From Anthoceros angustus (lineage: Eukaryota > Plantae > Anthocerotophyta), in assembly GCA_010909165.1 (NCBI GenBank), contig MU008191.1:310001-374000 (forward strand): a DNA stretch of 64,000 nt. The letters run 5' to 3'. Position numbers and translations under genes: made by a program. Under the pieces are notes generated by a model. The model was not told where the DNA came from, made no database searches, and was given only the letters and a program-made list of their open reading frames with translations. Below are positions 32,587 to 34,029 of the stretch, piece after piece (within the stretch, counting starts at the first letter, position 1; each line of letters begins with the position of its first letter).

Positions 32587-34029
32587 ATGGCATCGAGCAG
32601 CGAATTCGAACGCAAAGGCCGCACGGATCTCGGGGTGAATGTGGAGAATGGCAACACGCTGCGCATTGGGGATGGAGTGACCGTCCAATTCAGCCGGACC
32701 TTGCGAATCCCCGATGACAACAAGACGTACCCCCTCCCGCCAGGCCTGGGCTCCTTCCCCATACGGAGAGTCTCGGATTACGCCGGCAAGGTGCCGGAGA
32801 GCTGGCGCAGGCATGGCGGGGTGTTCCTCCCCATGTTCCAGCGGGAGGCCATGTGGCTCCGATTCGGAGGCAGGCCCTGGAAACCTAACGCCATGAAGCT
32901 GGCTGTAGGCAAGGTGTGCGCGCTGACGGGGAAGCCATGGTCGGAGGAGCTGCACGGGAAGCCGCAGGACTACCTGGTGGTTCCCTCGCAGCCCTGGTTG
33001 GATGGCATCAACTCAGGCCAAGGCACCATCAGCCAATTCATCGCCATGCCGCTAGGGATGGGCTACACTGTTGAAGGGCAGGTGACTGGCGAGGAGAAAC
33101 ACGGTGGCCTTCAGATTTGCGTTTTCGAGCCTAAGGCTGGAGTGTTCCCGGACCATTCCTATCCTTCTCGTCCCCGATCTTTCCTCTCCAATTTTGGAAG
33201 CTCGTACGCGGCTGACTCAGCTGAGGGCGAATCATCTCCGCCTCTAAAATCCGGCAGCGTGAGGACTTGTGCACCAGCAGGAGGATTTGTATTCGGATCA
33301 GCATCCGGCTCTGCTGCACCAGAAGGAGGACCGTTATTCGGACCAGCATTCGGCTCTGCTGCAACGACAGGAGGATCAGCATCCGGCTCTTCTGCACCAG
33401 CAGGAGGATCATTATTCGGATCAGCATTAGGCTCTGCTGCACCAGCAAGAGCATCAGGATCCCGAGGCTCTGCTGCACCAGCAGGAGCATCAGGATCCCG
33501 AGGCTCTGCTGCACCAGCAGGAGCGTTCGGTTCTTTTAGGACAAAAGTTCTTGCAGCATGCGCATCCTTTCGAGATGGACGTGAAGCCGGCACCGGGTCG
33601 CCTAAGGTGCAGCCAGGCGGAATGGAAATGGGGCTGGGAGCGGGAGGCAGCATGCGGCAGGAGATATACACTGACAAGCACGGCCTGCAGGTGTGGGATC
33701 AATCCACATTTTCCAGGGTTTTCGTTCATCTGTGCAACTCAGTCATGTGGCGGGACATAACTGGAGAGGCTCCGCCGGAATCGCCAGTGTCGGCCAAGAC
33801 GTACGCGTCTTACGGTTTGCCGTGGTTCGATCTGTACGATGAAGCGAGGGAGGGAGTGGATGCCTCTCCTACGCTGGCCGCGGTCAAGACCGTGAAGGAG
33901 ATGGACCAGGCCAAGGGCTTCGGTCCTCAACAAGATGACTCCTCTGTACCCGTGCCAAGCTGGAAAGTGCATGCCAGCTTGCCACCAGCCTTCGCACAGA
34001 AGCTCCCCGTGGACGACGGCGAATGGTGA
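32587..34029 (+). CDS. Intronless 480-aa uncharacterised protein resembling a bacterial/fungal hypothetical family, with a central Gly/Ser/Ala repeat insert
   Basis: Open GC-rich ORF. Conserved-looking blocks RTLRIPDD..YPLPPGLG.FP, GGVFLPM.QREAMW, QPWLDGIN, GGLQI, MGLGAGG.M.Q.IY.D and YGLPWF. The family assignment is from recollection only. Confidence 0.8.
   Translation: MASSSEFERKGRTDLGVNVENGNTLRIGDGVTVQFSRTLRIPDDNKTYPLPPGLGSFPIRRVSDYAGKVPESWRRHGGVFLPMFQREAMWLRFGGRPWKPNAMKLAVGKVCALTGKPWSEELHGKPQDYLVVPSQPWLDGINSGQGTISQFIAMPLGMGYTVEGQVTGEEKHGGLQICVFEPKAGVFPDHSYPSRPRSFLSNFGSSYAADSAEGESSPPLKSGSVRTCAPAGGFVFGSASGSAAPEGGPLFGPAFGSAATTGGSASGSSAPAGGSLFGSALGSAAPARASGSRGSAAPAGASGSRGSAAPAGAFGSFRTKVLAACASFRDGREAGTGSPKVQPGGMEMGLGAGGSMRQEIYTDKHGLQVWDQSTFSRVFVHLCNSVMWRDITGEAPPESPVSAKTYASYGLPWFDLYDEAREGVDASPTLAAVKTVKEMDQAKGFGPQQDDSSVPVPSWKVHASLPPAFAQKLPVDDGEW
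33268..33525 (+). repeat. Coding minisatellite (45-nt and 36-nt units) in the 480-aa gene
   Basis: Recurrent ggctctgctgcaccagcaggag, encoding APAGGxLFGSAxGSA and GSAAPAGASGSR. Confidence 0.85.

Follow-up and report, generated by a model that had tools for sequence, protein, structure and literature searches.

The stretch analysed here, referred to as the window, comprises 64,000 nucleotides (nt) of the hornwort Anthoceros angustus (contig MU008191.1 of assembly GCA_010909165.1, positions 310,001 to 374,000 of the forward strand; all coordinates below are those of the window). The gene in question is an open reading frame (ORF) on the plus strand at 32587..34029, which runs from ATG to TGA without an intron and encodes 480 amino acids (aa). 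According to the ORF list, homology and the family alignment, its product belongs to an uncharacterised family of bacterial proteins, which are about 335 aa long. An earlier sequence-only reading of the window had proposed this ORF as a candidate for horizontal transfer, and the proposal is borne out by its bacterial relatives, by a clade nested within bacteria and by physical linkage to plant genes. We consider it highly likely that the ORF is a nuclear hornwort gene of bacterial descent, which encodes a soluble protein and is part of a gene family for which horizontal acquisition by A. angustus has already been published.

The ORF is colinear with the bacterial proteins from end to end, and therefore an intron is not required; the intron-free frame of 480 codons read from the letters of the sequence thus stands. 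The ATG at 32587 follows the stop codon of a plant gene of the PPR-DYW type, which ends at 32473, after a spacer of 113 nt (32474..32586, plus strand), exactly the distance noticed at first. The ORF had also been described as GC-rich, and its GC content is indeed 0.56-0.62 (0.59 overall) as opposed to 0.42-0.53 in the flanks, with 0.49-0.53 upstream and 0.42-0.46 just downstream. Three parts of the coding sequence, all on the plus strand, can be distinguished, which also differ in their GC content at the third codon position (GC3). The N-terminal conserved half (32587..33171, residues 1-195) contains most of the strands of a beta-sandwich, is modelled with a predicted local distance difference test (pLDDT) score of 87-97 and has a GC3 of 0.75. 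It is followed by a disordered loop rich in Gly, Ser, Ala and Pro (33172..33606, residues 196-340) with six FG dipeptides, a pLDDT below 50 and a GC3 of 0.27, most of which was built from tandem repeats (33270..33524) whose periods are 36, 45 and 78 nt, the 36-nt unit with 98% matches. The C-terminal conserved half (33607..34026, residues 341-480; GC3 0.68) comprises two long strands with which the sandwich is completed, a small helical subdomain and a conserved terminal D-G-x-W. For comparison, the GC3 of the PPR gene is 0.49-0.53. The motifs quoted in the sequence-only reading, RTLRIPDD, YPLPPGLGSFP, GKVCALTGKPW, QPWLDGINSG and AMPLGMGYTVEGQVTGEE, were all found in the ORF, and they occupy columns that are invariant or nearly so in the family.

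A word-indexed protein search with the ORF protein returned more than 6,172 relatives, nearly all of them bacterial and derived from genomes as well as metagenomes. The bacterial relatives have a length of 325-350 aa (about 335) and are 55-72% identical over the alignable parts; the best of them measure about 330-345 aa and reach E-values of 1e-134 to 1e-116 and bit scores of 407-467, with both halves aligned. The top match, taken from EukProt, is a transcript of the hornwort Nothoceros aenigmaticus (397 aa; 98% of the query aligned at 52% identity). Of the more than 6,000 matches, the best 120 include no other named plant and, apart from this transcript, no plant protein, in keeping with the sequence-only reading, in which the family is not known from seed plants. 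In an alignment of 49 members, 84 columns are invariant, and the window protein retains all 84, including the motif set RTLRIPDD, YPLPPGLG.FP, QREA.W, QPWLDGI, AMPLGMGYTVE, MGL.AGG, H..NS, PWF, QQDD and the terminal DG.W. Compared with the bacterial proteins of about 335 aa, such as those of Thermincola and Merismopedia, the hornwort protein is colinear from end to end, carries every invariant motif and has the same predicted fold. However, it differs from them in an N-terminal extension of 13 residues, in a loop of 184 aa as opposed to a median of 57, and in the substitutions GKVCA.TG for GKVNA.SG and VFVHLCNS for VYVHIVNS. Searches of Pfam, NCBIfam and PADLOC gave no match for the ORF protein, and the family is among the larger and best conserved protein families that have neither a Pfam model nor a solved structure or a function.

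The name under which the family is propagated in the databases is misleading. “Integral membrane protein” is the UniRef name of the members from Thermincola potens (WP_013120859) and Merismopedia glauca (WP_106289368), and the same name is borne by a cluster of Actinomycetota proteins in the Atlas, so that the mislabelling suspected in the sequence-only reading is real. The highest mean Kyte-Doolittle hydropathy over 19 residues in the window protein is 0.86 and falls within the Ala-rich insert, and no transmembrane helix was found, as had been supposed. A protein of that name should contain at least one hydrophobic transmembrane helix, whereas both AlphaFold models, that of the window protein and that of the Thermincola protein, are beta-rich and globular and have no long hydrophobic helix. 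By its hydropathy and by these models the hornwort protein is soluble, and the database name is wrong.

AlphaFold2, supplied with the family alignment, modelled residues 11-190 of the window protein with a pLDDT of 87-97 and residues 345-460 with 90-96, while the middle remained below 50. The model of the Thermincola protein is better, with a mean pLDDT of 86 and a predicted template modelling (TM) score of 0.85, and the same loop is disordered in it (residues 181-198). The strands 347-357 and 370-383 of the C-terminal half fall within structural alignments that take in the N-terminal strands as well (28..386 in most rows), and therefore the two halves form one globule with the middle as a surface loop. 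The comparison by AlphaFold and Foldseek suggested at the outset thus yielded confident beta-rich models without a counterpart among solved structures: with the two models the best Foldseek E-values against solved structures were 0.47 and 0.27. An exhaustive VIA-align search with both gave best Z-scores of 4.3 and 4.1, to generic Ig-like sandwiches, which is below the level typical of chance matches. Among the sequences of the PDB, nothing real was found either with the single protein (E 0.08-0.7, in the low-complexity insert only) or with the family profile (no match at E 10). Around 100-120 core residues superpose on Ig-like and p53-like sandwiches (Y_Y_Y 3v9f, MSP 6tqs, p53 core 2j1w) with Z-scores of 3.5-4.3, a root-mean-square deviation (rmsd) of 4.3-4.6 and 4-11% identity. 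Such Z-scores do not reach the level typical of chance, and the matches point neither to kinship with these sandwiches nor to a function.

A fold search of the Atlas, by contrast with the search of solved structures, recovered bacterial clusters with TM-scores by row of 0.82-0.88 (305-321 residues aligned, rmsd 1.6-2.9), among which Actinomycetota is the commonest known phylum. A bacterial cluster of 591 aa, 41% of whose members have a VWA domain, was matched as well. The fungal relatives mentioned in the sequence-only reading were also seen, at the level of structure: these are clusters of ubiquitin-like domain-containing proteins of the Ascomycota (356 and 482 aa; PF00240 in 89-96% of the members), which carry an N-terminal ubiquitin-like domain that is missing in the hornwort proteins. 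Their core fold superposes over 244 residues with an rmsd of 3.8 and a TM-score of 0.59 by the fungal row and 0.44 by the query. They are also the nearest named clusters by language-model features (score 0.78), which is a lead only. The Ascomycota proteins are far more divergent than the bacterial ones, and the likeness is one of structure.

To place the hornwort gene within the family, a maximum likelihood tree, one of the checks proposed earlier, was computed with IQ-TREE from 59 rows and 344 columns under LG+C20+F+G4, with support given as ultrafast bootstrap/SH-aLRT. In this tree the eukaryotic copies form one clade within the bacterial diversity. The window protein, the Nothoceros protein and a third sequence (P0003) cluster together with a support of 100/95, and this trio lies inside a clade of 27 rows (95/93) which otherwise contains metagenomic bacterial rows, among them L085 (GC 0.745) and L013 (GC 0.65), and copies from Streptomyces and Euzebya plasmids. 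The nesting of the recipient clade is therefore supported at both nodes; this support does not extend to the root of the tree or to the exact sister of the trio. P0003 is itself eukaryotic, as its contig runs on into a COMMD9 gene and corresponds to a genomic contig of a sister run from which three introns have been spliced out. The contigs concerned are L012 1-3126 and L099 1-1987: an RNA-derived contig links P0003, the gene of which has a GC content of 0.65-0.72, to a spliced COMMD9 mRNA, and in the genomic contig the three COMMD9 introns measure 139, 162 and 175 nt.

Vertical inheritance of an old eukaryotic gene that nearly all plants have lost, or acquisition of the gene from a fungus, would explain why structural relatives occur in Ascomycota and why the eukaryotic P0003 groups with the hornwort proteins, and it could appeal to a tree that was built without fungal sequences. 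However, the eukaryotic trio falls within the bacterial diversity and shows 55-70% identity with proteins of bacteria, the model fits the bacterial clusters (TM 0.82-0.88) far better than the fungal ones (0.59, or 0.44 by query), and the hornwort proteins do not have the fungal ubiquitin-like domain. Moreover, the tree of Zhang et al., as far as its description in the paper goes, has the fungi outside the clade of Anthoceros and Actinobacteria (PMC7027989). We therefore regard a vertical or fungal origin as improbable. The Nothoceros orthologue shares the substitutions of the window protein and has an enlarged loop, and thus the transfer probably predates the split of Anthoceros and Nothoceros and would be common to hornwort genera and not specific to Anthoceros.

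The position of the gene in the plant chromosome was compared with reads from two runs of one organism (organism A), which contain 0.87-0.88 of the sampled words, over positions 31000-36000. The junction between the PPR gene and the ORF, and with it the 113-nt spacer, is bridged in both runs by contigs without a single difference (32417-32821 and 32396-32820), and the same holds for the junction at the stop codon (33815-34146 and 33815-34138). An absence of linking reads had been named in the sequence-only reading as the finding that would speak for contamination; instead, the contigs cross both borders of the gene, and together with the plant genes on either side they indicate that the gene is integrated in the host chromosome. 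As a single sample, possibly the source of the assembly, underlies both runs, the bridging is to be read as consistency and not as independent proof. The dates of the organism A runs (2017-2019) and the large number of RNA runs from its relatives would suit A. angustus, with A. agrestis and A. punctatus as the relatives. A second copy of the ORF, about 93% identical, is present in the reads of organism A (X1 record 6), and the runs of two related organisms contain copies that are about 90% identical over both conserved halves, although not over the insert.

Hornworts host cyanobacteria and other microbes, and an ORF from an associated bacterium, introduced by contamination or by a chimeric assembly, could account for a GC content and GC3 that are high compared with the neighbouring genes and for the 55-70% identity to bacterial proteins. 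Such a fragment would, however, hardly have plant or eukaryotic genes at distances of 113 nt on its upstream side and about 6.5 kb on its downstream side, nor would it be joined to them by zero-difference contigs over both junctions in two runs, even if these represent one sample and maybe the assembly source. It would also not be expected to share a long FG-rich insert and the GKVCA.TG and VFVHLCNS motifs with the Nothoceros transcript and not with bacteria, to have copies of about 90% identity in the runs of two related organisms, or to end in an AT-rich 3' flank with an AATAAA signal. Taken together, contamination appears scarcely credible.

When measured between the GYTVE and MGL..GG motifs in 139 family members, the loop of the window protein (184 aa as opposed to the median of 57) is the longest of all. 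The six FG dipeptides that it contains compare with four in the Nothoceros loop (P0001, residues ~183-272), none in that of P0003 and at most one in the bacterial loops examined. The Nothoceros protein has its enlarged loop at the same position, together with the hornwort-type motifs GKVCALTG and VFVHLCNS, which were not found in bacteria. Judging by these sequences, the loop was inflated in hornworts to an FG-rich disordered segment, in the window protein by tandem-repeat expansion. The hornwort loop resembles FG-repeat disordered regions.

Transcription of the gene was assessed with run X1, which is probably an RNA run. It covers the ORF and shows no depth in several downstream bins that are covered by the DNA run, a pattern that fits transcription of the ORF. 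A contig of X1 ends at 34146, near the AATAAA at 34128-34133 within the AT-rich 3' flank (34030..34146, plus strand), but the start of a repeat at this point is equally able to explain the end.

The expansion of tandem repeats halfway through the ORF resembles slippage in unconstrained sequence, and many of the listed differences from related species are non-synonymous, as would be the case for a decaying, functionless relic with a frame that is open by chance. On the other hand, the frame is intact across 480 codons with all 84 invariant columns retained, and the expansion is limited to the loop, for which disorder and variability are seen throughout the family. Homologues persist in Nothoceros, a different hornwort genus, at least two copies are present in organism A, and the ORF is covered in the probable RNA run. 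A relic is thus very unlikely, and we infer that the function of the protein has been retained.

Horizontal transfer of this gene family is already known for A. angustus. Zhang et al. (2020; Nat Plants 6:107; PMC7027989) attributed 19 genes of this species, which belong to 14 families, to horizontal acquisition, among them the “integral membrane proteins” AANG000517, AANG011215 and AANG011324 of Suppl. Fig. 76. These genes are stated there to be intronless and to lie on three scaffolds where most neighbours are plant genes; in the tree they cluster with Actinobacteria, the fungal homologues being the outgroup, and the event is termed Anthoceros-specific (PMC7027989). A Pfam family, which most of the legends next to it provide, is not given in the legend of Suppl. 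Fig. 76 (PMC7027989). The ORF in the window agrees with the published genes, as they are described there, in its hornwort host, the absence of introns, several copies, plant neighbours, the lack of a Pfam domain, actinobacterial and fungal relatives, and the same misleading name, and it very probably belongs to the AANG000517/AANG011215/AANG011324 family. It departs from the published account in one respect, in that the event is called Anthoceros-specific there, whereas the Nothoceros orthologue argues for an older transfer. As a transfer event, the locus consequently adds little to what is known; the additions concern the solubility of the protein, the lack of a relative of solved fold, the solitary nature of the bacterial genes, the greater age of the transfer and the expanded loop.

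Several points weigh against a transcribed hornwort gene of bacterial, more precisely actinobacterial, descent that is identical with a published family member, and they are considered together here. The single row nearest to the trio is L085, with its GC content of 0.745 and an HTH_31 neighbour, and this position has a weak support of 71/71. The nearest bacterial rows are all metagenomic proteins, and the rows labelled as actinobacterial stand on very long branches, so that an actinobacterial donor is compatible with the tree data but is not demonstrated by the tree. As fungal sequences were not included, the tree is also compatible with a route via fungi. The differences listed against related species comprise 12 synonymous and 21 non-synonymous ones, a selected sample that is not a valid test of purifying selection. 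The status of X1 as an RNA run is the guess of the tool, and the identity with the AANG genes is deduced from the name, the lack of introns, the copy number, the missing Pfam family and the donor and outgroup taxa, and not from sequences. With these points taken into account, bacterial descent of a nuclear hornwort gene is still the reading that we favour strongly.

Under this reading, a gene from a bacterium, probably a high-GC donor resembling actinobacteria, would have entered the hornwort nuclear genome before the divergence of Anthoceros and Nothoceros and would then have been kept, duplicated and transcribed in the hornwort. Its product is soluble and presumably cytosolic, with the N- and C-terminal halves in one beta-sandwich-based globule, and the surface loop between the halves would have been inflated to the FG-rich disordered segment through tandem-repeat expansion. 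A cytosolic location is suggested because the N-terminal extension reaches only 13 residues past the bacterial start and contains no signal or transit peptide.

The conserved globule may, as a tentative suggestion that we hold with less than even confidence, be an enzyme or a binding module of high specificity whose ligand occurs in bacteria and eukaryotes alike. This is suggested by the 84 invariant columns, in which Arg, Asp, Glu, His and Gln as well as Gly loops are abundant, and by the high conservation across phyla together with independent fusions to a ubiquitin-like domain in Ascomycota and to a VWA domain in bacteria. A bolder proposal, which we consider rather doubtful, is that the family represents a new fold with an undiscovered universal activity which was domesticated by hornworts through the FG-repeat loop. 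It draws on the thousands of members, the 55-70% identity across bacterial phyla, the lack of a Pfam model and of a solved relative, the solitary genes and the independent fusions. If this were true, the FG loop would give the family protein a new cellular address or condensate-forming behaviour in hornworts. A plant with several expressed copies would offer a tractable eukaryotic system for the family, for instance in Anthoceros agrestis.

The bacterial gene context was analysed in 93 loci, of which about 50 were distinct after removal of near-duplicates; the ORFs predicted in them were grouped by an all-against-all comparison. No conserved partner gene emerged from this neighbour clustering of the 93 loci, and the largest cluster outside the family proved to be an antisense shadow ORF of the family gene. 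Two neighbours recur. A regulator of the XRE/HTH_31 type directly adjoins the family gene in six cases (L001, L085, L013, the P0018 contig, Miltoncostaea and Euzebya), and a peptidase similar to M12/astacin lies immediately downstream in three lineages. The peptidase has the motif HEFGHALGCIH (L068 5579-6253, L074 4523-5278 and L098 1214-1440), and its contexts include a conjugative Bradyrhizobium plasmid. Further contexts include MazE/ParE, AraC with a glyoxalase, DNA polymerase I, RCC1/sortase and a sigma factor. Mobile elements seldom carry the family, the instances being six megaplasmids and two jumbo phage genomes. The bacterial family gene is thus a solitary and often locally regulated accessory gene.

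In Thermincola potens (CP002028; L004 6983-10128), the family gene is located between a gene whose HD-domain product gives matches of the Cas3-HD kind and a gene for a TIR protein of the ThsB type, with the type III CRISPR genes Csm6, Cas1 and Cas2 and a Mu-like transposase nearby. A role as a defence gene, prompted by this setting, was dropped, as there is no PADLOC match and the setting does not recur in the approximately 50 other contexts.

The sequence-only reading had placed the ORF next to DNA resembling a transposable element, which holds in part: repeated DNA is present, but no protein of a transposable element was identified there. Just 3' of the gene, a unit of 108 nt occurs as a tandem duplicate at 34240-34455 (96% matches), and the segment 34006-34172 reaches around 600 times, that is several hundred-fold, the neighbouring depth in the DNA run and is therefore repeated, high-copy DNA.

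The upstream PPR-DYW gene (29585..32473, plus strand) encodes the E and DYW domains (DYW_deaminase, 5.7e-34) and consists of two ORFs at 29585-31216 and 31469-32473, separated by a gap of about 250 nt. In the reads it shows an enormous summed depth and many rearranged joints, which is expected for the very large PPR family. On the other side, eukaryotic genes begin about 6.5 kb downstream of the ORF with a piece of an OBG GTPase and a sorting nexin with PXA, PX and Nexin_C domains (together 40528..46977, plus strand); the sorting nexin (43906-46977) comprises 1,023 aa in one uninterrupted ORF that contains all three domains.

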